Origin: Bugula neritina | Lineage: Eukaryota; Animalia; Bryozoa | NCBI GenBank assembly: GCA_964035545.1 | Contig: OZ037773.1 | Location: 4,245,751 to 4,309,750 of the forward strand | DNA length: 64,000 nucleotides | Reading direction: 5' to 3' | Shown: positions 1 through 55,771 of the stretch, in pieces | How the letters are laid out: the number at the start of each line of letters is the position of its first letter | How positions within the stretch are numbered: position 1 is the first letter of the stretch | The notes under the pieces: generated by a model | Database searches by the model: none | Told to the model about the DNA's origin: nothing | Seen by the model: only the letters and a program-made list of their open reading frames with translations | Position numbers and translations under genes: made by a program

Positions 1-2542
1 TTTTATCAACTATTTAGTATTAACTATAACTCTGGGTATAACTAAACTAAATTTAAAAATAATACTTGGTATTGATCTTATAATAAATAATATTATTTAA
101 TTATATTGATAATATTAATACTATGACTATTACCTATTGGCTATTAGTCAGATCAAATCAGATTAATTATTCTTGATGAGCGCCTCTGGCTCTTAACAGG
201 GGTATATTGCGCAAGAACTCTTCACTTTGAATTTAATATATTTTTTATATACCTACAATTTTAGCTTGAATTTCGTCTTTTTTTTCCTTTCCCTTCCTTC
301 TCTTTATTCTCTAAACACTGCAACTTGTCGACATCATTTTTTATTACTACTACAGATTACTAGTAGTACTACTACTATTACTACTACTAGTGTTACTAGT
401 ACTGAATCTTAAACTTAAAGACAAAGTGAATGTTTATCTGCCAGTGTCACTGTCAGTGTGCCAATAGGCTACTACTTAAAATACGACTATCACTTATAGT
501 TATTTGTGATAAATATAGTAAGACCTAGTGGTAACTGCTATAAGTACAAATTTCACTGCAACTACAAATAGTAATACTACTAGTACTCTTATTATTAGTC
601 ACTCTACACTCAGTCTTAAAATATGAGTAATGAGCAGAGTACTACTACTAGTATTATTTAGATTTACTTTAAGTATAGTAGTATTAGTACTATAAAATAT
701 TAGATAGTCTTCAACTTCAAGTCATAGTAATGCTGATAGTAATGAGAGACACACATGATTTAGTGCTATTTCTAGATCTAGTATAAAAGATAGTAAATTG
801 TCATTATCATATTTATAGGCTTAATTAGTAATACTTGTATTGACAGTCAACATTTAGCTACTGAGTATCAATGTTATCACCATGAGTATAATTATTGTTA
901 CTATTAATATTAGGCCAACTATTTGCTTAGTGTAGAATTAGTGTTGTAACTCCAAGTTAAAGCAGGTAAACTGAATGTATCTTGTTACATGCTAAGGTTA
1001 ATATATATTCATACTTATGCCATTATTAACAATATTCATTCTTTTCAATAGTTGAATTTGATAACAAATAATAATATGCCATAAAAATGGTTAAATTTAG
1101 GTTAAATTTTCTTTTAGTAGGCTGCTAATTTTCATAATTTCAATTTGACTATTTCCTTGTGATTTATTTATGTTGTGGTTTTAAATAGTTCTGGACCATT
1201 AGTATATTTAATAAGTTAGATGAGAGGGTATTCTCACTGACTCAGTCAGAGTCACACTCATTCGGTCTGCACACTTTAGAAATCTGACGTTTAGTAGCCT
1301 ATAGCTTCAATGTAAATGTAGTATTCAAATGATAAGGCATACACCATGCAGGTAGGACGTGATTCAACATAAGCATCAATTGTTCACAAAAGTAGTTGGT
1401 TAATAATAAAATCTTGTTGTAAAGAAATTCCTGTGTCAAAGGAAGAAGGAAAATATTTTCAAAATGGTTTGCTAACCAGTACTAAATATTTTGTGATTTA
1501 AATGCAAAAATCTTACTGCAAAGAACAGTAGCAATTTTTTTCTTGTTTGCTAAAAGCATTGCTTCACACACCATTTCAGTTTTTTTCTCCAGTAAAGAAA
1601 ATGTTAGCTTTAGGCTTTCTTAAAACATTTAATTTCGTGATTATTCAAGTTCTACATTATGGGTAACATTGATTAGGGTTCTACTTGTGCTCTGTACTAA
1701 TTTTTATAAGTGTGAAGTATAGATAAGACCGTTTGGAATTGTTGATAAGACTGTATTTGCCTCCCCCAAGTTATTAGATTTTATTATGGCTTTTTGCTAT
1801 CCGCAGCTTGCTTTCGATTTAAGCGCTTTATTATATATGGTGGTCTCACTTTTTATTATAATGATAAACTTTATTAGCTTGATTTTCCATTTATATTATT
1901 TTTGCTTAAAGTTGATCGAAAAGCTTCACAAAATATTTAAAATATTAAAAAAAGCTTAAAGCAGTTGTAAAATAATCCTGTAAAGCTTTAGAAAATCATA
2001 AAGGCTACAGTTACTAGCTCGTTATCTAGATTTCTTATAATATAATTCTGAAAGCTTACTAATCAAACAAGAGGATAAAAATATCATTTCTCAGCAAATT
2101 ATGTAATGTTAAATAATACTTTAGTGGTACCTTTTTACTGACATTGTGTTCTTATGTTGTATTTATAATACCCTGGGCCCAAGTTGATTAGTAAACATCC
2201 CACCTACCTATACTAGAATGTTATAGTGAACAAAAATACTAAAACAAACATAGTTGGCCAGTTAATTTAGGGCTCAAAAATCACTTCAGCTTTCAACTTT
2301 TCAAAAGAGATTTTTTGGTCGAAGCTGTAACCAACTCAGATCCTAATAAGAATGGAGTCGGGTCTAAATATGTGACTGAGAGGAGTAGCTGGGGCTGCTA
2401 GTACTTTCTGAGCTGTCGGCATTCTATCATTGTTGATACTGGAGTTTTAGACTATTTGCTGCTAGTCATTATTTCCTCACTTCTTTGGAAGCTAGATGCT
2501 TGTTTTACCTAATTTACCTAATTGTGTTGTACACCACAACAT

Positions 2543-2755
2543 AGGGAGCAGCCTAGGTTAGAGGGGTTAGAGCGTTTTCTCAGTAAAGTCATAGGTTCCA
2601 ACCCCACGAAGGCCATTAGTGATGTTAGGAAGAGCATCTAGTCATAATTGCTCCTGTGCCCCATCTAAATAAGTTCTTAGCCCTATTTAACAAAAAACCC
2701 TTTCTATCAGGGGTTTCTCACAAGATGGCGACTATAAACTTGCGTGAGTTTTGAG
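2543..2755 (+). mobile_element. tRNA-derived SINE, copy 1
   Basis: Collinear with 40292-40505 (shared GGCCATxxGTGATGTTAG, AATTGCTCxTGTGCCCCAT and GCGACTATAAACTTGCGTGAGTTTTG). The 5' end has a degenerate A-box/B-box-like head. Confidence 0.7.
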
Positions 2756-3889
2756 TGTCGTACTGAGCATAGTTATGCCATCGGAAAGCTAGTCATAGTA
2801 AATTTGTACCAATGGTTAGCCTACTATAATGGTGCACTAAGCCTCTGAGCTGTAGTTTCTAACATTAATTAAAATTATCGATAATCAATATGCAAATGAG
2901 GCTGAGACACTACCTGTATGAGCCTTCATGTTGAACGGTGACTCAGTCACATGCCTGACTGAGTCATGTTTCAGGATCATGGTGGCACCACTTGAAATGA
3001 ATACTTATATTCTGATTATTCAAATCAATGAAAGGTTCTTTTAATAATCAACCAACTAGGGTCCAAGCTGCCATTAGAAATATATCAATGCAGTTAACTT
3101 TAAGTTTAAGAAACATTTTTATTTATATATTTATTTCGTATTATCTCTGAGATAAGAATTTTGATATAATATATACAGACTATATTTGTCGATTCGATGG
3201 TTTGCACTTGAAAAGCATTGCGTCAAGCTTCTCCATTAGTTAATCATGTGGAAACTACTACCTACTGAGTGACGGATCTTTAACTCAAGTCGTTGACTCA
3301 ACTAGTTGGCTGATCACCCTTGAAAGTTGCTCTGTCTAGCATCTCTAAGCTGTAGTTTTAATGGGATCAATGCTATTCGATTAGCTTGAACTGAAAGAGC
3401 AAAGGTTGTGAAGGCAAAGTTATATTTCCTGTCGGGTGACCTCTCTCAATGGGCTGCGGCTAGCCTAGAACTCTGTTAACGTTGGTGAAGGTTGTTGTTG
3501 CTCTTTTGTTGAACATTTTTCTATGTCTGCTTTTGCTACTGTTTTCGCTTGAATTTGCTGATTCTTGCTGCATCTACATTTTTTAAAACTGGAAATTATT
3601 ACTAGATGCAACCTATAAAAGTTAAAGCTTGAATATTGTTTATTTGACTACATGCAGACCAGATGTGTTAACTGAGATCCAACTCCTGCTGTTATATCAA
3701 GAACTAATCCATTACTAATCTTTATCGTATTGCACCAGCATGCACAGCATTGCGGGCAGATGTAGGCTGTATTATAATGATAAATTATACTATTTCAATT
3801 GAAGTAGACAGATATAGAATGATAAATCTATAATAATATAGTAGTGTATAGAGTAAACAGCCACCCTTGTCAGTGTAAGTGAGATAGAA

Positions 3890-4040
3890 TATAGAGTATG
3901 AGTATATACTATAGGGCATAGGCTACAGAGTATGGAATATAGGCTACAGAGTATAGAATATAGGCTATAGAGTATAGAATATAGGCTATAGAGTATAGAA
4001 TATAGGCTATAGAGTATAGAATATAGGCAATAGACTATAG
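3890..4040. repeat. 21-bp minisatellite (AATATAGGCTATAGAGTATAG)n
   Basis: Tandem copies are directly visible. Confidence 0.85.
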
Positions 4041-4971
4041 ATCATACATGTGTTAGGTAAGTTTTAATGGATTTTATTCTAGCATGTTCCAATTCCACTA
4101 CAGCTGATGTAAAATTAGTTCCTCCACACTGCATAAGTAGATTTCCTTTTTCCTATGCTCCAAATACGAGCGAACCTATTAGACTGGAATGGTACGCTGT
4201 ACATGATGTAACCTCTCTATGATTGGTCACTCATTCCATCACTTTCGGTTGTGAATCAATCTCAACTACATTTATTATATATTTATTAATAACATCCAGT
4301 TTAATGCAATTATCTTTAGTTATGATTAAATTGAGTAGATGTGCTGGTCTCATGCTTCAAAGATTCCATAAACCACTCGAATTTCCTATGACTTTTATTA
4401 TTCTATAATAATTAGTTTCACATGTACATAATTGGTGTGACTGTACAAATTGGTGACACTCAGAATATTATGGTGGTGGCATTTTATTGCAACATAACAT
4501 ACAAATCATATAGTTGTACTGTACAATATATTCATTGAACTCATGGTATACGTAAATGGTCAAGCAAGGCTTTACTTGCACCCATTACTTTCACCCATTA
4601 CTTTCACTTCCCTTTTTCTACTAAATCCTTACAGCCGCCTACTAAATGTTTTGTACATTTTACAATAGGCAACATTGTATTATATTTACTTGAAAAGTGA
4701 ATTAGAAATAGTAGTTTATTCATGAATTAACTTTTTTACTTGAAAGTATGAGAAATCATAATATTTTTTTCTTAGTTATTGCCATTGTATTATTTAAATC
4801 ATGGGAAACATCATTTCTTCAGTTTTCTAAGTGTGATTTCTTAGAATATTAGTGATATGTTGCTCTACGTTTTGTTTCAGTCTCTCTCTTACGTATTAAT
4901 ATCCCATGAGTCAGCTGAAGGAAATGTTTCACTGATATTGCTGATGGTAGTTGGTGCATACAGCCTGCATC

Positions 4972-40721
<35,750 letters not shown>

Positions 40722-41660
40722 TGTAGACTCAAACCTTCTATTCAACAGCAAAACGGGGCGCTAGGAATACGGTCCGCTCTATTGGAACACTGGTTTGGTT
40801 TCTGGCAATTACTCAAAACTTACCATACATAACACAGGAGAGCTATGGAAACGCTCTGTAAAATTGTCAGCAATCCTAAGGCTAAACTTTACATGGCCTT
40901 GTTCTAGACATTTCGTAATATTTATTTTGGCCATTGCTTTGTTTGTGTTAGTTATCTTCTCTCTACCATATACAAAGACTGTATATTTTCTACATACATT
41001 CCGTTTAGCCAAGGCTCTGGTTATATTGATTTTTGTATTTTATATTCCTGGTGTATCCTGGCATTCTTGTTCAGGTGGTGATGATGTGTTTAGCTAGGCT
41101 GGAATGGCAATATGGTGGCATGTAGTTATATATTACATATATAATACATGTACATCAATACATATGATATTAGCTTTGCTGATCCACTCGTATCTCTAGT
41201 CGCTAGCAAATTTATAGAATTATCATGTATAAATAAATACTTTTATTTATTTTGCTTACTAGAATATTTTATCTAGAAAAGAATAAATTACATTAATTTT
41301 CTCTACATTAGTTCTTGTAGTAAAATGCAATTTCAAGTATTTCAAATATTTGTCTAGCATTTCAACATCTATGCAGTTTGTGTTACTCAGTGCCTAATGT
41401 AAACAATTATTTCAATAAAAACTGTAAAAATTATTTGCCATTAAAGAGCATTAGAGTAAAATAAATTGCTTTAGTCGGTCTCATGATTTTTCATCCTAAA
41501 CAAGTGAAAACATCAGCTTAAAGACATACCTTTCCGTCGCAGGGTCATTTCAAATTATATTTATAACTAGATAGATGTGATATGCACAAGAATGAGTACT
41601 CAATGTGATAAACTTTAATTCAACTACTGAACAAGTCTACGCTGCTAGCACACTGTCACC

Positions 41661-44600
41661 ATGCCACCTAAAGTTAAAAACAAGGGAAAGAAACTCCAAA
41701 AACTCTGTGCTAATAAACTAGAGGATGACAACTCTGAAGACCAGGATGATGAGATTGCTCTCAATGGAACAGATGATGACGGTGATGCCAGTACAAGCTC
41801 GCTGTCATTTGCTAGTGAAAACTTCATAAACAGTAAAGCAGCCTCATTGGCAGCTAAGAACAGTTTTGCTTTGAGCAAGCAAAAGCGATGCAAGAAGAAA
41901 AAGAAAGCATCCATTGGAAAAAAGTTGGATGTTAACACTTGCACAATCAGTGCTCTTAAGAAGGTAGTTTAATTTAAGGAGTGTTTGCTATGTTTATATT
42001 ATAAGGTTGGTTGATATTAATAATTTTCATAGTAGAAGTTTGGCACCTAATGAATTATCACTTGTTTAATTCTTATACATCCATTTCTGTTCAAATGTTT
42101 GAAGGTTTAAACTGAGCCTTATTATTATCAGCTACAACAAGTCACATATCTAGCTGTTACATATAATAGATTCTTTTGCAAATAAATTGTACATTGCATT
42201 AAACTTTTATGAATTGTATGAGTTTGTAGCAATTTAATTTGACTCAGTCAGTATATTATAGAGCTGCATATACTACAAACATTTTAGACTGGGGTGCCAC
42301 ATGCTGTAGCTCAGAAAATTGTACGGTATAGAAAGAAACACAAGTGTTTCGTACACATCAATGAGTTGTTGAGAGTTCAAGGGGTCAAAGGTGAACTCTT
42401 TAGTCTCCTGGCTAAGTTGGTGTTTGTCGGATCAAATGCCGAAGAACTCAACACCCTATTAAGATCGTGAGTAGGCTGAGTATAAGATTTGATGCATTAT
42501 GGGCAATTAGTTTTAGAGTATGGAAGTTTTCTAATTCGTTTCAAGTTTCTGTAGCATTCTTATAAGTATACTTGTAACTACAGTGCTCCTTCCATATCTC
42601 CCAAATCTATTTTTAACGGAATTTCATAGGTCACAAGAAGGGCTTGAACCCCCATTCCGTCGTCTATGTATGGGTGTGACAAAAAAACTGAATTTAGCGA
42701 GTCCATAAGTTATAAATCTGGTATTCTACTATGTCACGAATTGAGGGTTGAATACTGAAGCTTAGTGAGATACGGAGGGAGCATTGTTATGCCTTAACAG
42801 AGATGCTAAATTTTGCCTGCATCTGCAGCTACACTCACTTATTGGTCTAAATTTACAGTAGAAAACCGGCAAACTCGAAATCAAATGTCAAGGCCAACAA
42901 AGGTAAAAGCAAAATTAGCTCGAGAACTCAGAAATTAAAGCTTCCTAACAAAACTGGACCAAGGAAGAGTAAATCAGCAAACTCCATAGCTGGCACAGAG
43001 AGAGACAACCCCCGCAGCTATGATCTTGTAGGTTGATCACATCACTGCTTCAGTACACTATTGATTTTACTGATTAACCTAAACAGCGTGTAATATTTCA
43101 TGTGCCATGTGTATAGATATAAGCCAGTATTGTGGGCTCATTATGAGCTTCCTAAATTTGGAAAACTATTTAGCATCTTTTATGAAAATATTCAACAAGT
43201 TCGACATGTTTTGCTTGGCAAAAGTCAATGAAATAGTATATCAAATGACATTTTACCAAGTTTTAAGGTTCTAATCCAGGGGTGTCCAACCTTTTCAGAC
43301 CGAGGGCCAGTCTGCAAGTTTCAGCTTGAGCTGGGGGCCACAACATTTTTTCTGTTTTTAAAATCAATTTTCAAGATTCATTAAACATCTGCAGGCTATA
43401 TGTAGTGTAATTATAAGCGCGGGCTAGGCTTTGCATGTTTATTAAAATCATAACATATTTAAATAGATATATATTATTTACGTGTGTGTATGTGTGTATA
43501 TATGCATTTAGTTAAAATAGGTAAACAAGAAACATTTCATTTTTATTACTTTAATAATCAATAATTATATATATGCATTTATGTTTGTGCATAAAAAATT
43601 ATACATATATACATACAAAGTATATATTCATGATTGTAAATGCAAATGTAAACAAGATGTGCCAGTGCTAAGAGTCTGTACTCATACCAGTATAGTTATA
43701 GTTTACAACCATCAGTGAAACACTTGTGAGTACACAGTGAGTACTGTTTGCCTGGAACAATTCTGTTAATATCTGGTTTCGTATCAAAACATATAACCCT
43801 TAGTTGCTGGACTAAGTGCTGACTAGTGAGTGAAGTGTAGTATATATTTTGTGTATTTCATTTGACTGAAAATTAAAAGTTCAAAGTTCAAACCTTCAAG
43901 CCATCTCAGTGCAGCATCTAACAAGTAGTCAAAGGTCAAAGGTCAAGGCGATCACAAACCCCTAATCATTTCAGTACATACTCGCACAATATTCAATCAC
44001 GGGCTTTCCATGTACCGATCTCAGATCGATCTCGCTGAGATCGATCTGAGCACGTTTCTCAGATCGATCGTTTTTCCATGAGAGTGTCAGATCGATCTTG
44101 CGAAGTTGCCTCCTCTTAAGTGAAGGATACTTTAAAAGTACAATTTGTTCGCCTATTTGAGTGATTAAAGCTACTACTGTTGAAAACAAGATGGTAGTAG
44201 TCTAAAATTTAATCCCAGCTATAAAATATACGCAGCAAAGCTTTCAGTGTATGGTAATTTGGCCAATTTAAAATAATTAATTTTAATTTTTAAGCTTGAC
44301 AGCTTATATAAAATTAATGGCTGTCTTGCAGATTATTAATAAAAGTACAGGACTGTTTGTTACCTGCAAGTGCAAATTAATATGAGAGTCAAACTCAAAA
44401 CAAATAACGGAGACTAGCAGTAACTTATAATAATGATTATAATAATAATTATAATAATAATACGAATAATAATATATCGACAGCCCCAAGCTGTCACCGT
44501 GACCTCCAAACCACCCCTTAGTCACCCCAATCTCCACCCGTGATCTGCCCAGCAAATCACCGTATTCGCCCAGAATACAATGACCAGAAACTTGAATTTG

Positions 44601-47600
44601 CTAAACTCTCTAATAGATATAAACGTTCTCAGTCCAACACTGTCACACGATTGATAGAGGCTTTTATTTCGCAGCGCAGCACGAGGAGAAGTCCTTGACC
44701 CCTGCTGTGTACCTAAGCACTCTATCTTGCTGCGCCGCTAACGGCATCGGCATACTTACAGCCCACATCTCCCCTAGCTTCTTACAAAGCTACTATGGAG
44801 ACGCCACGACCTCTGGCCAATCAACATAATCAGCCAAGTACGCAGGTCGCCGCCGCACACGTTGCGGCCGTCCATGATGGAGCAGCGGCACATCTGCATT
44901 CTCGCTCTCCTCAGCATCAACTCCAACCTGTTCGGTGGGGCGTTCTGGACACCTTACACCATTCACATCAGCATCGGGTTGGGCTGGGTCTTCCCGAATA
45001 GCATACTGACCCGCATTGGCCTCCTCGCCATGCTCCTCGCTCAACACTAACGGCAGATCCCCTGGAGGCCCAGCATAGGGTATATGCTGATCATCAACAC
45101 GAGCAGAGAGGCCACCCTGATGGCGCCTTCCACCGTGCTGAGCAAGCTCTCCACCATGGCGACGCTTTCGCACGTCTCTGACATGCCGTGGTACCCCATT
45201 CACACACACTGTGTGTCTTGATACAACCCCGGTGACCTCACCGAGTGCCCACTGCCTGGTGCACGAGGGTGTTGGTGGCTTCAGCCAGACTTCATCGCCA
45301 ATGGCGAAGTTACAGTCACCACAAACGCCAGCTTCTGTGGTATTAATATCAAATGGTACCCGCCAAGGGTATCGAAAGAGTACGTTAGAAGGCACCGAAC
45401 CTTCATCTGCGTCCTTCCTGGGTGTCACATTATACCAGAATGTGGCTTCTTCGGGAGAAATCCCCCCTCTCTCCGCAATCCTTTTGATTGTCCGGTGGTT
45501 TCTCTCGACAATCCCGTTGCCGCTCGGGGCGTAAGCGGCTCTGAATCGAAGAGATATTCCCCACTCGTCAGCAAACTCCTCAACAGATGCTGACCTGAAT
45601 GCCATGGAGTTGTCCAAGAGCAACTCTTCACATGGCCCTCGCTCAATCACAACGCTGCGCAATTGAGCAACAATTTTTTCTGCAGACTCACTCTGAAGAC
45701 GTCGCCAGATGGCCAGTCGCGACGGACCACAGTCGACCATCGACAGAAACAGTCTGCCATCGTAGTGGGTTACATCAATCGCAACTCTCTGCCAATTTCC
45801 TTCTACTGACAAGCTTCCTGTCGGGACAATGTTCTCAGACCTTAAGGCGGGGTCGACCCTCTGGCATGTCTCACACCCAGCCAACTCGCGCTTCACTTGC
45901 TCTCTGGACAGATCTCTACGAATTTGTCGAGCAAGGTAAAGCGTCCGATCAACGCCTAAATGATGAGGCAGGTGCGCCGCCCAAATGGCATCTTCCACAC
46001 TTTCCCCTGTTGAAAGTGCTGCAATCACCTGCATGTCGGTGCTGCCAAGTCCACGGCTCCCAAGCCACTGCTTAGCCACCCTAGTCATGCAATCAGCTTT
46101 GTTTTCTGCCGTCGGCACAAAACGAACTGATATTTCAAGGTCGAACTCGGTGATCGTGTCTCGGATTACACCCAAACGACGCTTTATGAGCATCTCTGCA
46201 GCACTCTTTGTTCTTACGCGACTACGGGCGTCAACAGTGTTTCCCATCCAGTTGACGACCGTGAGCGAGTCGATTGCTAGCGTGAAGGTTTTAAACCCCC
46301 ACGTGACCGCCAGGTTGATTCCTCTAGCCACAGCCTCCAACTCGGCAACATTGATATGGGAATGATCGGACTCCTTCCGTAGCCATGACGCATCCTCTAC
46401 AACATTGCCATCTACCTCCAGGACCACGCCTATCCCTATGGAGCTAGCATCTGTCCACACTGTAACAGATCCCCCTGGATTCACTCGCCAGCACCCCCGC
46501 ACAGGGTCCTCTCGCTTAGCTCTGTTCAGCAACTCTGCAGCCAGATTGCTGACAGCATTTCCAACAGGAGCATCCCAACCCCCACCACATCCTAATCGTT
46601 TGAGGAAGCTGCAGTGCATACGGAGCCATCCGGCCACCGGATAGTGACCGACCAACCGACCACAAAGGGAGAAGAGGCCACGCTTTGTGAGGCTTTTTGG
46701 CTTCAAGTGGATCTCTGAGAGGGCTGTTGCCCTCATCATTCGTAGTTCTCCGCGACTGTCGCTTTTAAGGGCAATTCCCAACAGTCGACCTCCATCAAGA
46801 CTTTCCGGCTCTTTAGTCTCGAGCCCATACTTGGCTAGATGCTTTCGTACTTCCTCAGCACCGACAACAGACTCCTGCACCACTATGTCATCAATGTAGT
46901 GGTCCGTTGCCCGACGAACCCGGTCGTCCATCGACAGTACTTTACCAAGAATCGAAGTCATAATTCTGGGAGCGCACGACAGTCCAAAACCGAGCCGAGT
47001 CAGGGCGTAGTGCACCCCCTTATGTCTAACGACCTGGTACTTCCACAGATCTTTGGCTATGTGAATTTGAAGATAGGCTGACTTCAGATCCACAACTCGG
47101 AGGTTACCTTTCAACTGTCTCCACTTTCTAATCTTTTCACTACACACCGCAACCTTGTCATCGCCAGTGTGAGATTCCACGTAGTTGTTCAGCTCACGGT
47201 AGTCCATGACCGGCCGCACCTTGTCCTTAGTTGGCTGGAACACTGCAAGCAAAGGGATAACCCCTTCAACTGGGCCATCCCATCGCTTTAACCAACCCTT
47301 GGAGATCCAGCTCTCCAGCTCTGCGCAGTAGCGTTCATGAATCTGAGGCGCCTGAGTACACCTGTACTCTGACACACGAGTTTGGAGCTTTGATGGAGAC
47401 TCCCCGGTCCACCGCCAACTGACGGTCCATCGACCATTGTCGAAATTGGCCACGAAATCGGGATCCTCCACTCGCAGCGACCCCAAGTCACTGCTACGAC
47501 TATCATTGACAGCTGTCGTAGCCCCACAGGCCAGGCCTGGGCTGGCAACTTTCTGACGAGGAAAGTCACAGCAGCCAGCTGAACTCTGCTTTCCCCAGAC

Positions 47601-50600
47601 AACAGAGTATCGCGAGTCAGAGCCTCTCCTGACAGTCACACCTCCCATATGGTCGATGGCATCACCACCAATGAGGCAATCAACGCCAAGGTTCCCCAAC
47701 TCGCTCATGACAGGAGCCGAGACACTGAAGCAGTGTCCCTGCAGTCCAACGGTAACTCGGCAAGTGCCCTCCACGTGAGAGGCACTGCCATCAGCCGTTA
47801 ATAACGGCCGGCCTGCTTTGAGCCGTTTCCCACCAACCACCCGCGGACTTACCAGAGTCCGCTCGCTTCCAGTGTCGACAAGACACGAGAAACAACGGCC
47901 GTTCAGCACTGCCTGAATGACGGGCATACGGCTACTTGTGGTAGTCCTACTAATTGCCCCAGATAGCGCCAAGCTATCCCGCGGTACGCATGCACCGCTC
48001 AGAACCTCGCTCATCGATAAAGAGCAAGGCCCTCGGCGGTTAACGCCTAAACTGTGGTATCCATGCTGGAGGATGCGGCGCCCCGAGTTGCATCCTCCGC
48101 CTGAAAACCCGGCTGGTTACCTTCCAGCCCTGCAGCTACTGCAGGCGGTTTCGGGCAGTCCCGAACCCAGTGGTCGATGCCTCCGCACCGGAAGCATCCA
48201 GCTCTCTTCCCAGAAGAGTTTCTCACGGGCCGCTTGTTGAAAGAAGCCCGCCTGCTCTCGGTGCAATCCTTTACCCGGTGTGCACCGCCACACCGATAGC
48301 AGGAACTGGCACCTGACTGCTGCTGCGCTCTTCCAGAAGCAGCAGCGACTTCCCCCGACTGTTGCCCAGATCTAGAACGGCGTGCAACAGCCCTGCGCGA
48401 GACCACTCTTTCTCGCACACGTGCCAAAACTGACCCAAAGTCGGCCTTGTAGGCACTTTCGAGGGTTACTGCCCACTCGTAGACAGAGGCCGGCAAGCCT
48501 TCATAAAACTGAGCTCGAAAACTCAGATCATTGCAGGTCATGCCGACTCGCCCACCGAACCGCTCCAAGCGGTCCAGGTACACGTCAATCGTGTCCCCGT
48601 CTTCCATGCGGCAGGTAGTGAACCTACGCCATGCTTCCTGCATAGGCATGGCGTACTCGGCCACCAAGGCCGCTTTTACTACATCCCATTGGGATGCTTC
48701 GGCCACACGCATCCTGCTGTAGACACGAGCAGCATTGCCACCCAACATGTAGATGAGGATTTCCGTTGGGGCAATCTGTTCTACCTCGCAGAGTCCCTCA
48801 AACTCCCTGATCCACGCAGTGACATCTACACTGCCATCGCCAGTAAACTGGGGCGTGGCTTGTCGAATTCTCGACAGAATCGGGCCCTTTGCCTGATTGA
48901 GGATGCTAGCCAAGACCCTCGCATCCAACAGAACTGGAGCTGCAAGCCCAGTGCCCGCAGATGATGGCCCGCCAAGGTCGGAAGCGCCACCAACTGCCGA
49001 ACTCTCCCCAGGAGAGTCCTTGCCTTCAATTTTCTCTCCTTCCCGTGACATTCCGTTCTCCACAGTCAACAAGTATGAGTAATAAACTATTTGACTGAGA
49101 ACCAGAATGCACAAGCTTACTAACTACGTTTAAGTAGTAGTAAGAAACAGCAGTAATATTATGATTATATCACGTTGTTACTAACCATAAAGTAATAATA
49201 GTAATAATAGTAATAATAGCAATAATAATGATAATGCTGCCGAAATAGCTTGTTACCTGCAAGTGCAAATTAATATGAGAGTCAAACTCAAAACAAATAA
49301 CGGAGACTAGCAGTAACTTATAATAATGATTATAATAATAATTATAATAATAATACGAATAATAATATATCGACAGCCCCAAGCTGTCACCGTGACCTCC
49401 AAACCACCCCTTAGTCACCCCAATCTCCACCCGTGATCTGCCCAGCAAATCACCGTATTCGCCCAGAATACAATGACCAGAAACTTGAATTTGCTAAACT
49501 CTCTAATAGATATAAACGTTCTCAGTCCAACACTGTCACACGATTGATAGAGGCTTTTATTTCGCAGCGCAGCACGAGGAGAAGTCCTTGACCCCTGCTG
49601 TGTACCTAAGCACTCTATCTTGCTGCGCCGCTAACGGCATCGGCATACTTACAGCCCACACTGTTGGGCTTAAAATTACAAAGAAAATAGCTAATGAAAC
49701 TAAGTTTTGATAGTCATTTAAATTCAATTTAAATTTTCCCATTTTTTTACTTTCTACTGCATATAATTGAGTTTTCTTAATCATCGTACTGAAAGTCAAA
49801 ATTTTGGCATCTGAAAAAGTGGCTATCATAATTATTTAACACTTTGCTTAGTAATTATCAATAAGTTATCATTTTTATTAGCAGACAACATTGTAGCGCG
49901 CAGTCTTTTTCTACTTCTCAGATCGATCTGGCGTCTTTCCATGGTCTTATTGACAGTCCTGTAAGTTTATTAATAATCTGCAAGACAGCCATTAATTTTA
50001 TATAAGCTGTCAAGCTAAAAAATTAAAATTAATTATTTTAAATTGGCCAAATTACCATACACTGAAAGCTTTGCTGCGTATAGTTTATAGCTGGGATTAA
50101 ATTTTAGACTACTACCATCTTGTTTTCAACAGTAGTAGCTTTAATCACTCAAACAGGTGAACAAATTTTACTTTTAAAGTATCCTTCACTTAAGAGGAGG
50201 CAACTTCGCGAGATCGATCTGACACTCTCATGGAAAAACGATCGATCTGAGCACATTTCTCAGATCGATCTCGGCGAGATCGATCTGAGATCGGTACATG
50301 GAAAGCCCGTGATTGACATGAGATCGATCTAAGTTCGAGCTCTACAGACCGACCAGCTCAGATCGACGGAGATCGATCTTTGGCGTCTTTCCATGGATCG
50401 ATCTCGCTGAGATCGATCTGAGATCGGTACATGGAAAGCCGGTGATTATAAAACAAAATTGTTTAGGCATCTAACCTTAAAACAGTATGTAAATGAAAAC
50501 TAACATATAGATAAGAATATTTTAGTACTGCATAAGTGAAGTGTGCCAGGGATTCTTCAACTACTTATCTTTCACAATACAATCAATAAAAATGAGATCT

Positions 50601-52217
50601 TAGTTATATACTTTTAAAAAAGTCTTGTCTCTATATGGCCTGTCCTGATTAAATGTCTTTGAAATATCTGTCTGTGCAGGATAGCTAAGGGCAACTTTTT
50701 AGCTGCAACTGCCTTGCTGAGGTTTGCATTGTAACTGTGTAAAAATTCAGTACCAATAAAAACAATCTCATTTGATTGAAGGCTACTAGAATCAAAATTT
50801 AAAAACTATATGGTGTGAATCTTATTTTTCTCATTGCAGCTTTTTTGGAATTTTTTCATTCTTTTGCAAAGTTGTAGGAAAAAAAACTGCACATTTTTGG
50901 CTAATTTTGCTTCAAAGTTGATTTTTGTAGTACCAGTAAAATATCTTAGCAGGAAAACATGATATCTGAATAAAAAAGCAATGACTTTTAAATTTTATAT
51001 AAATTGTGGATTTATACACTGGTCCAGTATTATAACATTAATACATATTATAATGTATCACATTTATTATGAATAATGCAATAAACTATTATAAATTTGT
51101 TTCACATTTATGATGGATAATACACTATTATAATATATCAAATGCATTATAACATAAATTAAAAAAAACAAGTCTATACGCAGCATCAATAGTCATATAT
51201 TTCCTGTTTCCTGTTTATAGTCAGAGAGATGGCCAAGAGGAAGCGCATCACTCAGTAGCGTTTTGACGATCTCACCTCGAATTCATAGGTCAAGGTCACA
51301 GTATAGAGACCGATATGAATACCCTCGCAGTTCAAGTAGAGGGCACAGTGAGTGCATATAAATGATCAACTGCTTTGCGTTTTGGTTTTTAGATAGTGTT
51401 ATTACTAATTTACATAATATACAACAAGATCTATACATACACTTATATATAACATTTAATGATTTTAAAAAATTTAACGTAATATATTAAGTTCAGTATA
51501 CTACTTCATTAGAAAAATATTTTACTTTTTAAAAACACTAATAAACTTAATGACTGACTTGGCCTTTGCCTGTGATTCTATAGGAATGATAAAATATGAT
51601 GTGAGAATACCAGAGGGACGGTCACGCTCCCCCCTTAAATATCATGATGACAGGTTGTATTCGGAGTTCCTCAAAAGTCATAGGAATGCAAAGTTTAACC
51701 CCCAGGGTTATGGTGAAAGTAGTCAAAGTGGATATCCTTCCCACCCTGAGCCTACAGCCTCAAGTGTAAGTCAGTTTGAATATGAAATCAGCAGACAAAT
51801 TTGGTTTCAATTTGAGGCACTAAGATAATCATTGAACAAAGAATTTCTCTCTCCATTTACTACAGCAACTGCACAAGTTTATACTTGATATGTTTATAAT
51901 AAGTCAAAGAAAAACAATGTTCTAGATTAAAAATTGTAGCAAAAGAAGTTTTGTTTGAATAAGAATTTTAACCAGCACCTTAAACTAAGGTACACGTCAA
52001 TATTTGACCAGGATTACCACCCTAGTCGAGTATTAGCATATATTTTGAGGAATTTCATCAGTCTATTAGTATCATATGTGAAATAAAATCAAGTTTGAAA
52101 GTGAAAGTCGTCAAATTGTAGCATGGAAATGTTTGTACAATTCAATTATTTTAGGTAGAGAAAGTAGCTGCTGCAACTAAGGTGGACCAAGACATGATAT
52201 CATGCATTATATTGTAA
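41661..52217 (+). CDS. Unrecognised 340-aa protein with a ComEA/EEPD1-type helix-hairpin-helix domain and a C-terminal CaaX (CIIL); exons 41661-41963, 42288-42466, 42859-43027, 51221-51347, 51584-51765, 52155-52217
   Basis: Six GT-AG exons with compatible phases (0,2,0,1,0) sum to 1023 nt. LDVNTCTISALKK|TGVPHAVAQKIVRYRKKHKCFVHINELLRVQGVKGELFSLLAKLVFV fits the ComEA HhH pattern. The protein ends DMISCIIL*, and AATAAA lies at 52256. Confidence 0.78.
42581..42786. mobile_element. Tc1/mariner-pogo-type MITE family B, copy 2 (inverted relative to copy 1)
   Basis: TA|CAGTGCTCCTTCCATATCTC...GAGATACGGAGGGAGCATTG. The internal segment matches the reverse complement of 31441-31520. Confidence 0.75.
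43277..43872 (-). mobile_element. Decayed hAT (Charlie/Buster-like) transposon end with frameshifted transposase C-terminus
   Basis: TIR-like CAGGGGTGTCCAACCTTTT at 43277. The minus strand at 43870-43712 reads FSQMKYTK/(frameshift)LTSQHLVQQLRVICFDTKPDINRIVPGKQ...QVFH*, resembling the hAT dimerisation tail (FSxMKxxKxxxRxxLTDxHLxxxLR...PDIxxL...QxSH). Confidence 0.7.
44358..44767 (-). repeat. 3' LTR
   Basis: Direct repeat of 49251-49660 with TGT...ACA ends. Confidence 0.95.
44793..48110 (-). CDS. pol: Pol polyprotein (aspartic protease, RT, RNase H, integrase), reached by -1 frameshift from gag (first ATG 48014)
   Basis: Motifs: LVDTGS (PR); RPVMDYRELN, DLKSAYLQ and YIDD (RT); TDASSIGIG and HINVAELEA (RH); H-H...CETC zinc finger and D-D-E (DVTH, DNSMAF, ERNHR) (IN). 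The frame stays open upstream to the slippery site. Confidence 0.93.
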   Translation of the reverse strand, partial: GFSGGGCNSGRRILQHGYHSLGVNRRGPCSLSMSEVLSGACVPRDSLALSGAISRTTTSSRMPVIQAVLNGRCFSCLVDTGSERTLVSPRVVGGKRLKAGRPLLTADGSASHVEGTCRVTVGLQGHCFSVSAPVMSELGNLGVDCLIGGDAIDHMGGVTVRRGSDSRYSVVWGKQSSAGCCDFPRQKVASPGLACGATTAVNDSRSSDLGSLRVEDPDFVANFDNGRWTVSWRWTGESPSKLQTRVSEYRCTQAPQIHERYCAELESWISKGWLKRWDGPVEGVIPLLAVFQPTKDKVRPVMDYRELNNYVESHTGDDKVAVCSEKIRKWRQLKGNLRVVDLKSAYLQIHIAKDLWKYQVVRHKGVHYALTRLGFGLSCAPRIMTSILGKVLSMDDRVRRATDHYIDDIVVQESVVGAEEVRKHLAKYGLETKEPESLDGGRLLGIALKSDSRGELRMMRATALSEIHLKPKSLTKRGLFSLCGRLVGHYPVAGWLRMHCSFLKRLGCGGGWDAPVGNAVSNLAAELLNRAKREDPVRGCWRVNPGGSVTVWTDASSIGIGVVLEVDGNVVEDASWLRKESDHSHINVAELEAVARGINLAVTWGFKTFTLAIDSLTVVNWMGNTVDARSRVRTKSAAEMLIKRRLGVIRDTITEFDLEISVRFVPTAENKADCMTRVAKQWLGSRGLGSTDMQVIAALSTGESVEDAIWAAHLPHHLGVDRTLYLARQIRRDLSREQVKRELAGCETCQRVDPALRSENIVPTGSLSVEGNWQRVAIDVTHYDGRLFLSMVDCGPSRLAIWRRLQSESAEKIVAQLRSVVIERGPCEELLLDNSMAFRSASVEEFADEWGISLRFRAAYAPSGNGIVERNHRTIKRIAERGGISPEEATFWYNVTPRKDADEGSVPSNVLFRYPWRVPFDINTTEAGVCGDCNFAIGDEVWLKPPTPSCTRQWALGEVTGVVSRHTVCVNGVPRHVRDVRKRRHGGELAQHGGRRHQGGLSARVDDQHIPYAGPPGDLPLVLSEEHGEEANAGQYAIREDPAQPDADVNGVRCPERPTEQVGVDAEESENADVPLLHHGRPQRVRRRPAYLADYVDWPEVVASP
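48047..49114 (-). CDS. gag: Gag (probable start MSREG at 49051) with two CCHC-type zinc knuckles
   Basis: Capsid-like region FTGDGSVDVTAWIREFE and knuckles CYRCGGAHRVKDC and CFRCGGIDHWVRDC. Confidence 0.92.
   Translation of the reverse strand: MCILVLSQIVYYSYLLTVENGMSREGEKIEGKDSPGESSAVGGASDLGGPSSAGTGLAAPVLLDARVLASILNQAKGPILSRIRQATPQFTGDGSVDVTAWIREFEGLCEVEQIAPTEILIYMLGGNAARVYSRMRVAEASQWDVVKAALVAEYAMPMQEAWRRFTTCRMEDGDTIDVYLDRLERFGGRVGMTCNDLSFRAQFYEGLPASVYEWAVTLESAYKADFGSVLARVRERVVSRRAVARRSRSGQQSGEVAAASGRAQQQSGASSCYRCGGAHRVKDCTESRRASFNKRPVRNSSGKRAGCFRCGGIDHWVRDCPKPPAVAAGLEGNQPGFQAEDATRGAASSSMDTTV
48068..48110 (-). promoter_or_regulatory. -1 programmed ribosomal frameshift signal
   Basis: G GGU UUU heptamer in the gag frame, a 5-nt spacer, then a perfect 9-bp stem GGAGGAUGC/GCAUCCUCC. 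Pol is in the -1 frame and is open from this point. Confidence 0.85.
49251..49660 (-). repeat. 5' LTR
   Basis: Direct repeat of 44358-44767. Contains AATAAA on the minus strand at ~49556-49561. Confidence 0.95.
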
Positions 52218-52352
52218 TTTTGGCTTGTATGTGTAAATACAAATAGTATATTTCCAATAAAATATGATACACTACTTATTATAGCACTTATTCTGCAGTG
52301 ACAGTTACTGGATTTTTATGTGCAACAGAACAACTCTTTCGAAGAACATAGT

Positions 52353-52368
52353 GGCCCTGAAAAGGGCC
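52353..52368 (-). terminator. Histone 3' stem-loop (H2B)
   Basis: GGCCCTTTTCAGGGCC on minus, followed by a purine-rich HDE GAAAGAG. Confidence 0.95.
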
Positions 52369-52398
52369 GTTGGGGTATGAATCAGGGATTTAAGACGT

Positions 52399-52767
52399 CT
52401 ACTTGGAGCTGGTGTATTTGGTGACTGCCTTTGTACCCTCAGATACAGCGTGTTTGGCTAATTCTCCTGGGAGAATTAGTCTTACTGCGGTCTGAACTTC
52501 TCGGCTGGTAATGGTGGATCTTTTATTGTAATGAGCAAGTCTTGATGCTTCACCAGCAATTCTCTCAAAAACATCATTGACGAAACTGTTCATGATTGAC
52601 ATTGCCTTGCTGGAGACACCAGTGTCAGGATGGACCTGCTTTAAGACCTTATAAATGTAGATTCCATAGCTTTCTTTCCTTTTCCTCTTCTTTTTCTTAT
52701 CGCCAGTGCGGGCTGCCTTAGCCTTTCCTGCTTTCTTTGCACCTTTAGAGCTAACTTTAGGAGGCAT
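52399..52767 (-). CDS. H2B: Histone H2B (replication-dependent)
   Basis: [12 protein letters not shown]...[22 protein letters not shown]...[10 protein letters not shown]; intronless; has a 3' stem-loop. Confidence 0.98.
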
Positions 52768-53072
52768 GGTACTTCGAGTCCGTAATTTACAATGTTGAAT
52801 GATTCCCATTACAGTTGCGCGTCATTATATCATGCAAAATATGTAAATTAGATAGTTCTACGCTTTTCATTGGCCAACGGTAAATAGCTCATTGTTTATT
52901 GTAATCATTAGGGCGCGCATATTTGAATAAACTCTACTAAGACGTCCGTTAAACAGCCGTTATATGATTGGATAATGTCTAACTACTGTTTATGCATATA
53001 AAAACAAACCACGTTGTTTTCGAATGATCATTCAGCATCAAAGTATCGTTGCTACTATTAAATTACTATAAA

Positions 53073-53450
53073 ATGTCTGGACGTGGAAAAGGAGGAAAGG
53101 CCAAAGGCAAGAGCAAGACTAGATCTTCGAGGGCTGGACTGCAATTCCCAGTCGGAAGAATACACAGGCTGCTCCGTAAGGGCAACTATGCCGAGCGAGT
53201 TGGTGCCGGTGCCCCAGTTTATCTTGCAGCTGTAATGGAATACTTGGCTGCTGAAGTTTTGGAGTTGGCAGGAAATGCTGCCAGAGATAACAAAAAGACC
53301 AGAATTATCCCCCGTCACCTGCAACTAGCCATCAGGAATGATGAGGAGTTGAACCGACTCCTGGGAGGTGTCACCATTGCTCAAGGTGGTGTGTTGCCAA
53401 ACATACAAGCTGTGCTGCTGCCCAGCAAGACCAAGAAAGCTGCAGCCTAA
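53073..53450 (+). CDS. H2A: Histone H2A (replication-dependent)
   Basis: [32 protein letters not shown]...; divergent from H2B. Confidence 0.98.
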
Positions 53451-53479
53451 CTGTCGACTAGAACCCAACTAAACCCAAT

Positions 53480-53495
53480 GGCCCTTTTCAGGGCC
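53480..53495 (+). terminator. Histone 3' stem-loop (H2A)
   Basis: GGCCCTTTTCAGGGCC followed by ACCAA and AAAGAG. Confidence 0.95.
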
Positions 53496-54203
53496 ACCAA
53501 TTGATTCCTAAAGAGTGTTCATTATCATTGCTATTACAAATAGCATAACATGTCACATTGTTGCTAAATTTTACAATTTTAGGATATTCACTCATGCTTG
53601 TAGAGGAGGTATTTCGCCTCAGATACGTTACAGTAGCGACTTGATTTGTTAAATTATTGTACGCGCATGTAGCAAATCTTACTACTACTAGCACTATTAC
53701 TACCACTAGCAGTTTAGGTTGTAAGAGGATAGGAGTTATCTCATGAAAACGTCGACTATAGAGTATAGTATAAGTATTTGAATACAATCGCAGTTCTCAG
53801 CTGTGGACAGTCATTAAAATTATCAGTTAGCCTTATGTGTTCTGCAAATCATTGGAATACCCACAGCACGTAACAGCAGATTTGAAACGTGTAGATTGTT
53901 ACATACACCACCGAGAACTTTTCAGTATAATTATATTGCGGATAAGTTAAGGTTATCTGTATTATTATAACTATTTGCCCCTCCTACTTGACAAATTTAT
54001 TTACCTCAACTCGTTATCGCTATGATATTAGGCAATTATTGCAGCTGCCCCACCCCACAATCAACCTTGGTGTTATTCAATCTATGTAGTATGTACAATA
54101 CGGGTAATCATTCAAGGATATTTAACTTTTGAAAACTAAGTTATGTACAATTACTATAAACTACAAGATTGAGAACATGAACTACACTTTGGTAGGAGAT
54201 GGT

Positions 54204-54219
54204 GGCCCTGAAAAGGGCC
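54204..54219 (-). terminator. Histone 3' stem-loop (H4)
   Basis: Reverse complement of GGCCCTTTTCAGGGCC. Confidence 0.95.
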
Positions 54220-54248
54220 GTTGGGGTTATTGAAATGCTACATCTAGT

Positions 54249-54581
<333 letters not shown>

Positions 54582-54752
54582 CTAAAGCGAATGATGAGCG
54601 ATCCCGCGGTACCAAGATATATATTGTCACAAAACGAACGTCTTAGTGCTTTGCCCAACAAATCAACTTTTCATAGGAGTATTTGCATTCATTGTTTCGC
54701 TCACTTAGTTAGAATAATTTAGTAGTTGACCTATATCTATACTAACCAATAG

Positions 54753-55244
<492 letters not shown>

Positions 55245-55270
55245 ATTACTTGAAGCTATACAACCCCAAC

Positions 55271-55286
55271 GGCCCTTTTCAGGGCC
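55271..55286 (+). terminator. Histone 3' stem-loop (H3)
   Basis: GGCCCTTTTCAGGGCC followed by ACCAA and CAAGAG. Confidence 0.95.
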
Positions 55287-55771
55287 ACCAATATTATCAA
55301 GAGTCATTACTGTTCAAATCCTAATATTTGTAGTTGTTAGTATTACTCTTCCTAGTTTCTTGTTGCCATTAGCACTTAGTTCTATTAGTATTAGTCTGTA
55401 AAAGCAACACTGTAAGTTGCACTTTCAATTAATCTTGGCTAGGAATGCAGACAGTTATTTTTTAAATGTAAACCTGCAGCTGCTACTCAAGTTTGGCTAA
55501 CTGAGTAAGTCCCTGGTCTACTTGACAGTAGCTGCCTATGAAATCCACTATGTGCATTATTTATTAATGAGAACCATTTTTAATAATAAAAGGGTATGCA
55601 GTGTCTTATAATTGAACAAATAATAAAAATACATGTACGTATATAATGTGTAGAATAAATTTCCCTTCACCTAGTGTTGAGTTAGGACAAGTAAAACAAC
55701 AGAATTGATTGAAATACAGTCACTACATGATATACTTATACTAGTCTACTGTCACTACTAGCTGTGGTACT

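Follow-up and report, generated by a model that had tools for sequence, protein, structure and literature searches.

The DNA considered here is a 64,000-nucleotide stretch of the Bugula neritina genome (contig OZ037773.1 of assembly GCA_964035545.1, forward-strand positions 4,245,751 to 4,309,750), referred to below as the window, and all positions are counted from its first nucleotide. Our subject is a gene on its forward strand whose six exons join into 1023 nt, a 340-codon open reading frame (ORF) that ends CIIL-TAA. The encoded protein contains a single helix-hairpin-helix (HhH) module of the ComEA type and terminates in the CaaX prenylation box CIIL, and the gene converges on a quartet of histone genes. 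Its features are as follows.

41661..41963, + strand: exon 1, 101 codons, donor AAG/gtagtt, phase 0; encodes the N-terminal MPPK (41661-41672), then an acidic patch and the basic cluster KQKRCKKKKK (41877-41906), and at 41919-41963 the opening 15 residues of the HhH module
42288..42466, + strand: exon 2, 179 nt, ends in phase 2; core of the (HhH)2 module (the Pfam match ends at about 42419), with the family signature YRKKHKCFVHINEL
42859..43027, + strand: exon 3, 169 nt, ends in phase 0; Lys/Ser-rich basic segment
51221..51347, + strand: exon 4, 127 nt, ends in phase 1; no in-frame ATG; conserved motif WPRGSASLSSVLTISP at 51230-51277, then an Arg/Ser (RS)-rich stretch
51584..51765, + strand: exon 5, 182 nt, ends in phase 0; Arg/Ser/Tyr-rich, predicted to be disordered
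52155..52217, + strand: exon 6, 20 codons and the stop TAA; CaaX box CIIL at 52203-52214
52256..52261, + strand: polyadenylation signal AATAAA, 39 nt past the stop

All exon borders are GT/AG, and the junction phases (0, 2, 0, 1, 0) are compatible. The acceptor of exon 3 is of the NAGNAG type (tttacag/tag/AAAACC; window 42853-42861), with an identical sequence in the B. neritina reference genome; use of its second AG would remove one codon (SRKP to SKP) and keep the frame. The protein has a mass of about 38 kDa and an isoelectric point (pI) of 10.1, with 20% Lys plus Arg and 17% Ser plus Thr, and is mostly disordered. It begins MPPKVKNKGKK, has an acidic patch at residues 17-45 (12 Asp/Glu, pI 4.1), the cluster KQKRCKKKKK at residues 73-82 and one HHH_3 module at about residues 87-145, and continues through a Lys-rich and then an Arg/Ser-rich segment to the terminal CIIL. 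A Pfam scan of every exon gave no domain other than HHH_3, and no catalytic domain. A run of 43 residues (33-75, ALNGTDDDGD...NSFALSKQK; window 41757-41885) is invariant between the two Bugula lineages compared below while the residues around it vary, and it is not recognisably conserved in the more distant relative L013.

The six-frame ORF list reports only two pieces of this gene, a 103-aa ORF that covers exon 1 and a read-through ORF across exon 5. A preliminary description of this DNA had nevertheless assembled the six phase-compatible exons into a 340-residue protein, had attributed the gene's absence from the ORF list to an ~8.2-kb transposon-filled intron, and had named the N-terminus, the acidic patch, the basic cluster, the Lys-rich then Arg/Ser-rich region, the single ComEA-type module, the lack of a nuclease domain and the terminal CIIL; all of these stood up in the analyses that follow.

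Support for the six-exon gene and its relatives

Four independent lines support the gene model: the HHH_3 match across the first splice, comparison with the B. neritina reference, the absence of a start codon from exon 4, and the layout of the gene in diverged relatives. The Pfam HHH_3 model has 65 positions and a cut-off of 27 bits. Exon 2 alone scores 36.1 bits, with a match that begins only at profile position 21, and the end of exon 1 joined to exon 2 scores 51.7 bits (E = 9e-14, profile positions 4-63 of 65). Since the score rises in this way, intron 1 evidently interrupts the HhH domain, and the proposed splice makes it whole again.

The reference assembly of B. neritina (GCA_010799875.2) contains a contig, VXIV02002010.1 (L003), that is collinear with window positions 31402-57559, which also excludes a human origin. 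Synonymous divergence between the two is about 0.13, and we therefore take the window to come from within the B. neritina complex, either from a sibling lineage or from a haplotype that is very divergent. In L003 all six exon lengths are kept except for one in-frame 3-nt deletion in exon 6, no GT or AG splice site is lost, and the frame runs without frameshifts to ...ISCIIL and the stop; an exon chain that is open in this way in a second genome is beyond chance. The exons are 94.3% identical with 3 gap positions (one in-frame codon), whereas the introns, where they align, reach 82.6% identity and have 116 gap positions (p = 8e-20 for the contrast); exon 1 (94%, L003 10001-10303), exon 3 (95%) and exon 4 (94.5%) align without indels. 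The ratio of non-synonymous to synonymous divergence (Ka/Ks) is 0.30 for the whole coding sequence (p = 2e-5), with lower values of 0.18 for exons 4-6 (Fisher p = 6e-5) and 0.10 for the HhH part, and the block around the polyadenylation signal, ttccaataaaatatg, is also conserved. The 660 nt 5' of the ATG (window 41000-41660) are 92.7% identical to the reference, clearly above the 73-88% found in introns, which suggests a conserved promoter or 5' untranslated region.

Exon 4 has no in-frame ATG and so must be spliced to upstream coding sequence, and exons 1-3, whose phase matches, are the only conserved exons upstream of it. With the conserved exon lengths and phases and the purifying selection described above, the join across the 8.2-kb intron is well borne out. 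GenBank nevertheless holds only the first exon: KAF6027872.1 (EB796_013819, a hypothetical protein of 103 aa, L003 10001-10312) consists of exon 1 and two read-through codons (VV, then stop), and exons 2-6 are unannotated in GCA_010799875.2. The window's exon-1 ORF is 90% identical in protein sequence to this entry (P0001/P0002).

The fourth line of support comes from relatives outside B. neritina. An exact look-up of the window's exon-1 ORF returned no record, and a word search with exon 1 matched only the 103-aa exon-1 ORFs of B. neritina. When 1.84 billion representatives were searched exhaustively with exon 2, 296 matches came back, nearly all of them bacterial-type multi-HhH repeat proteins, and among the 150 matches listed none has a CaaX box or the family motifs. 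Two proteins, P0006 (57% identity) and P0122 (41%), are single-module fragments with the signature YR(K/R)K.KCF.HINEL; a third, P0154, was added by a profile word search, and the contigs that carry the three are short, come from metagenome or Logan data and have a GC content of about 37-39%. Among these contigs, L013 has an exon 1 (3969-4286) that starts MPPKTKRG, contains the basic cluster KRRKGKK and ends KLDVNLCTITAMKK at a phase-0 junction. L006 has a 179-nt HhH exon, a 160-nt Lys/Ser-rich exon 3 and then an exon with EYWPRGSASMSSVVTISP, in phases 2, 0 and 1, and L012 has a 179-nt HhH exon, a 169-nt exon 3 with the phases unchanged, an exon with WPRGSASLSSVVTISP and a last exon ending in CIIL and the stop. 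In both, the exon 4 motif follows the HhH exon on the same strand, 1.5 kb further downstream in L006 (65% identity) and 0.75 kb in L012 (55%). A third type, represented by L014, L015, L016 and L007, has an exon 1 that begins MPQTKRQ and ends KVDINTCSMTSMRK at the junction, a 179-nt HhH exon and an RS-rich exon. The HhH exon is thus 179 nt long in the window, L003, L006, L012 and L014.

Across these relatives the conserved parts of the protein are the (M)PPK start, the basic cluster before the module, the (HhH)2 core with its connector YRKKHKCFVHINEL and, C-terminal to the module, SN..ELN.LL+.RK, WPRGSASxSSVxTISP(K/R), the Arg/Ser-rich tail and the terminal S/T-C-I-(I/L)-(L/M); the remainder is of low complexity and fast-evolving. 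The gene had been called an orphan, which is too strong, because at least three other lineages, all of them more diverged, contain relatives, and KAF6027872.1 had already put exon 1 on record. It belongs instead to a small conserved family that is unannotated except for the B. neritina exon-1 entry and is apparently taxon-restricted. The relatives probably come from other marine fouling invertebrates, plausibly bryozoans, though this is a guess.

Several further candidates were set aside. A JGI metagenome scan brought up the contigs already described and two more. These two, L024 (9905-10159) and L025 (12-113), both of low GC, share the octapeptide YRKKHKCF with the Bugula module (40-48% identity over 33-47 residues), but they encode ordinary bacterial secreted ComEA-type proteins with signal peptides and were rejected as family members; the octapeptide match was judged a compositional coincidence and was not accepted as a sign of horizontal transfer. 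P0003/L005, a 589-bp marine-biofilm metagenome scaffold, carries a B. neritina-type exon 1 (44-319) whose C-terminus differs, since it diverges after ...KKEKAS into unrelated sequence; we rejected it as a splice variant, and it is probably a chimeric assembly artefact.

Taken together, these comparisons make it very probable that the six-exon chain is a real coding gene, one that is conserved and mis-annotated in that the public record stops at exon 1. The model could be partly wrong if exons 1-3 and exons 4-6 were separate transcription units, or if this were a decaying or non-coding locus with a fortuitous ORF. That GenBank annotates exon 1 only would fit such an account, as would a 5.3-kb antisense retrotransposon in intron 3 that could disturb splicing in the window haplotype. 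Weighed against the missing start codon of exon 4, compatible phases in four lineages, a Ka/Ks of 0.18 in exons 4-6 with no frameshift, collinear HhH and WPRGSAS exons in L006 and L012, and a reference intron 3 of just 701 nt, we consider it highly improbable.

The helix-hairpin-helix module and the CaaX box

A 77-residue stretch across the exon 1/2 join served as the query for the Pfam and PDB searches. The best PDB matches are EEPD1 (9yi2, E = 1.5e-6), ComEA (8dss, 8dfk) and, weakly, the HhH domain of KIF22 (2edu, E = 0.12), and all of these are DNA-associated modules. ComEA-type modules bind double-stranded DNA without sequence specificity. The HHH_3 E-value of 9e-14, the nature of the PDB matches, the 20% Lys plus Arg and the MPPK start, which fits the motif of N-terminal methyltransferase (NTMT) substrates, all lean towards chromatin, and on balance we slightly favour the view that the protein would bind nucleic acid or chromatin.

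At the other end of the protein the sequence C-I-I-L-stop (52203-52217) places a Cys at position -4, an aliphatic residue at a2 and Leu at X, with the stop directly after. In six-frame translation SCIIL-stop is found a single time in the 64-kb window, and L003 and L012 likewise have one copy each, in every case at the equivalent position. The last residues read ...ISCIIL in L003 and ...PKQDVSCIIL in L012, even though the HhH exon of L012 is only 60% identical, so that orthologues keeping both the HhH module and the CaaX box, as a further check on the preliminary description required, are at hand in L003 and L012. In L014, L015 and L016 a 22-codon phase-0 mini-exon about 2.6 kb downstream, VPLRGVRRRRADKDDGDTCILM, ends ...DTCILM before its stop. 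CaaL boxes are substrates of geranylgeranyltransferase I, and CaaM boxes are substrates of farnesyltransferase. The C-terminus is therefore likely to be prenylated, and the residue at X predicts geranylgeranyl in Bugula (X = L) and farnesyl in one relative (X = M).

The conserved box also bears on the possibility that this is an RNA-associated protein, in which the Arg/Ser-rich tail and the HhH module would bind RNA or components of splicing speckles and the CaaX box would be incidental or otherwise used. RS, RSRS and RDRY repeats do occur in exons 4-5 and in the relatives, and HhH modules are found in RNA-associated proteins of the Tex/SRBD1/Spt6 type. The box has, however, been kept across lineages whose surrounding sequence diverged strongly, and the protein has no RRM, S1 or other RNA-binding domain; we regard an RNA role as improbable.

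Intron 3 and the neighbouring genes

The intron that separates the two halves of the gene contains nested mobile elements, and beyond exon 6 lies the convergent H2B gene:

43028..51220, + strand: intron 3, 8193 nt, filled with mobile elements
44358..49660, - strand: long terminal repeat (LTR) retrotransposon, 5.3 kb, intact, antisense to the gene, inside intron 3
43993..50316, no strand assigned: foldback element resembling a miniature inverted-repeat transposable element (MITE), with 364-nt inverted arms (43993-44356 and 49953-50316) that are 96% complementary
52399..52767, - strand: histone H2B coding sequence, the convergent neighbour, with a 3' stem-loop at 52327-52373 (Rfam)

Intron 3 is 701 nt long in the B. 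neritina reference, and about 7.7 kb of the window (43277-51018) has no counterpart there. The LTR retrotransposon sits inserted within the foldback element. Its LTRs (44358-44767 and 49251-49660) are 100% identical and are flanked by a 5-bp target duplication, CTGTT; its gag frame (48047-49114, 355 aa with a CCHC knuckle) and its pol frame (44793-48014, 1073 aa with protease, reverse transcriptase, DUF7047, RNase H and integrase) are both open. Since the LTRs are identical, the frames open and the element absent from the orthologous reference intron, the insertion is very recent and lineage-specific, and the element is possibly still active. About 0.7 kb flanking the foldback element on each side (43277-43992 and 50317-51018) is also without a reference counterpart.

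The histone quartet occupies 52327-55311 and consists of two divergent pairs, H2B(-), H2A(+), H4(-) and H3(+), in the same layout as in L003. Each of the four genes has an Rfam Histone3 stem-loop (52327-52373, 53475-53519, 54180-54224 and 55266-55311), and within the window there is neither an H1 gene nor a second quartet repeat unit. The closeness of the polyadenylation signal to the H2B stem-loop, given earlier as about 90 nt, is confirmed: AATAAA lies 66 nt from the edge of the Rfam match and about 90 nt from the stem itself. It had also been pointed out that the neighbouring H2B starts much as our protein does. The H2B start is present as described, but the two genes share only 19 nt of DNA there (score 17 against 12.3 +/- 1.6 in shuffles, maximum 18), which is not significant, and we rejected the idea that the gene start was copied from H2B.

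Upstream on the same strand (window 31402-40700, L003 1-9064) lies a multi-exon gene with a DIL domain (myosin-V-type tail) according to the reference annotation. A dispersed repeat of about 215 bp, with 73-84% identity between copies, is found at window 2540-2758 and 40290-40504 and at L003 8625-8843, 18444-18660 and 18773-18992; it is probably a Bugula family of short interspersed elements (SINE) or MITEs.

Possible function and comparison with known proteins

The best explanation we can offer, and one we hold tentatively, is a prenylated HhH protein that holds DNA or chromatin at the inner nuclear membrane. The CaaX cysteine would be prenylated in the cytosol, and the end of the protein then trimmed and methylated at the endoplasmic reticulum; the lipid-anchored protein would reach the inner nuclear membrane either by being imported by means of its basic cluster or by diffusing along the pore membrane, and would be retained there by its HhH module and Lys/Arg-rich flanks, binding DNA or chromatin without sequence specificity. 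Methylation of the N-terminal PPK may add to chromatin binding, and the conserved Ser/Thr-Pro and RS sites could allow phosphorylation-driven release at mitosis. The tethering step at the inner nuclear membrane, taken by itself, is doubtful.

Two known groups of nuclear proteins resemble parts of this scheme. B-type lamins combine a basic cluster like a nuclear localisation signal (NLS) with a C-terminal CaaX box, and targeting of new lamins to the inner nuclear membrane requires both the NLS and farnesylation (PMC2120380). Lamins differ in carrying a farnesyl group, where geranylgeranyl is predicted here (X = L), and in contacting chromatin through the lamina meshwork, where our protein would use its HhH module; with no intermediate-filament rod, no Ig-fold tail and no Pfam family besides HHH_3, it can be ruled out as a lamin. 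Proteins with X-P-K N-termini are NTMT substrates, typically on chromatin (PMC6465133, PMC3287205), and the substrates of NTMT1 and dNTMT include H2B, RCC1, CENP-A/B and DDB2. The (M)PPK of the window, L003 and L013 fits this X-P-K/R motif, although the likeness goes no further than the tripeptide. In Drosophila, H2B (PPKTSG) is methylated at such a motif, and methylation strengthens the contact of RCC1 with chromatin or DNA (PMC6465133, PMC3287205).

EEPD1, a metazoan, lipid-anchored protein with ComEA-type (HhH)2 modules, is a partial precedent, and no PDB sequence matches better (9yi2); the region of its first hairpin, PGVTRAVARSIVEYR, is similar to TGVPHAVAQKIVRYR of the Bugula protein. 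EEPD1 has two (HhH)2 modules and a dimerising EEP domain and is anchored by N-terminal myristate/palmitate on Gly2/Cys (PMC12988330, PMC12209743), whereas the Bugula protein has one module, no EEP match in any exon, an MPPK N-terminus and a C-terminal prenylation box. The presence of one HHH_3 module and the lack of an EEP domain and of Gly2 rule out an EEPD1 orthologue. Myristoylated and palmitoylated EEPD1 acts at the plasma membrane (PMC5321112, PMC12209743, PMC11733280), and this opens another reading, in which our protein would serve at the plasma membrane or endomembranes and its HhH module and basic regions would bind acidic phospholipid, protein or cytosolic nucleic acid, as in the membrane pool of EEPD1. 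That the best solved-structure match is lipidated and works there (PMC5321112, PMC12209743, PMC11733280) speaks for such a role, and so do the degenerate hairpins of the module. The combination of a basic cluster with a prenyl group, moreover, is the classic plasma-membrane signal of Ras and Rho proteins. The basic clusters of the Bugula protein, however, lie more than 120 residues from the CaaX box, next to which the residues are acidic or neutral, no catalytic domain is present, and the MPPK start points to chromatin-associated NTMT substrates (PMC6465133); we think a role away from the nucleus rather unlikely.

ComEA itself belongs to the same Pfam family (51.7 bits for our protein against the cut-off of 27), and 8dss and 8dfk are among the PDB matches. 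It binds DNA non-specifically while attached to a membrane. It does so by an N-terminal transmembrane or signal segment and outside the cytoplasm, whereas the Bugula gene is a spliced eukaryotic one, in which an intron interrupts the domain, the hairpins are non-canonical and a lipid anchor is predicted.

KIF22 (Kid) offers a eukaryotic parallel, a single ComEA-like HhH domain that holds chromosome arms (PDB 2edu, a weak match with E = 0.12). KIF22 is not prenylated, and its kinesin motor and coiled coil are both missing from the Bugula protein. By analogy with the KIF22 tail, our protein might be a soluble chromatin or mitotic-chromosome protein whose prenyl group serves protein-protein targeting or regulated solubility. 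The KIF22 match, the highly basic composition and the conserved Ser/Thr-Pro and RS sites, which would suit mitotic kinases, are in keeping with this, and the farnesylated kinetochore proteins CENP-E, CENP-F and Spindly, in which prenylation serves targeting, provide a precedent. Geranylgeranyl (X = L), however, binds membranes more strongly than farnesyl, and there is no coiled coil or other interaction domain, so that a soluble chromosome protein seems unlikely.

The preliminary description did not recognise the architecture. Our full-text literature search agrees in so far as it found no paper on a protein combining a helix-hairpin-helix module with a CaaX box; the literature naming both KIF22 and CAAX came to one paper, in which CAAX is used as a tool (PMC9302971). 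EEPD1, which had been missed, is nevertheless a partial precedent. As read from the predicted protein, HhH plus CaaX is an undescribed domain combination that relates to known lipid-anchored HhH proteins and to nuclear proteins with an NLS and a CaaX box.

A number of observations weigh against a prenylated chromatin tether at the inner nuclear membrane. Both hairpins of the Bugula module, G-V-P and G-V-K, are off the G-h-G consensus, and those of the L014 group (K-I-P and S-V-D) are off it as well; the hairpins of L006 and L012 read G-I-S/G-I-P and G-V-K, and G-h-x variants also occur in EEPD1 and KIF22. Isolated (HhH)2 domains of EEPD1 show no stable DNA binding (PMC12988330), and EEPD1 acts both in the nucleus and at the plasma membrane. 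The last 20 residues of the Bugula protein are neutral to acidic and offer no polybasic or palmitoylation "second signal" beside the CaaX box, and X differs among the relatives (L or M). The CILM exon of the L014 group was assigned by position, phase and splice sites, and because about 0.2-0.6 CaaX-like ends are expected by chance in 2.6 kb it is a candidate only; the same group starts MPQTKR, lacks MPPK and so does not fit X-P-K. Finally, no full-length or spliced product is found among the 1.84 billion cluster representatives, GenBank holds exon 1 only, and the gene is known from genomic sequence. The functional reading is thus an attractive one that is weakened by the degenerate hairpins and the lack of a second membrane signal.

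In its fullest form the tether at the inner nuclear membrane would define an undescribed class, a geranylgeranyl-anchored, N-terminally methylated single-(HhH)2 tether without a transmembrane segment, LEM/BAF or a lamin scaffold, released at mitosis by phosphorylation of the WPRGSASxSSVxTISP and RS sites; we put this forward as a speculation that is more probably wrong than right by a good deal. The biological reach of the finding is limited for now, since members of the family are so far known from no more than Bugula and a few marine relatives. The gene is nonetheless a concrete case of a conserved gene lost from annotation because its exons are short, its sequence is of low complexity and, in the window haplotype, one intron has been swollen by nested transposons. 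If the proposed function is true, a DNA-binding-type fold would be joined directly to a prenyl lipid within about 340 residues. This would be a minimal, lamin-independent way to hold chromatin or other nucleic acid at a membrane, and a second, independently built lipid-anchored HhH protein beside EEPD1.

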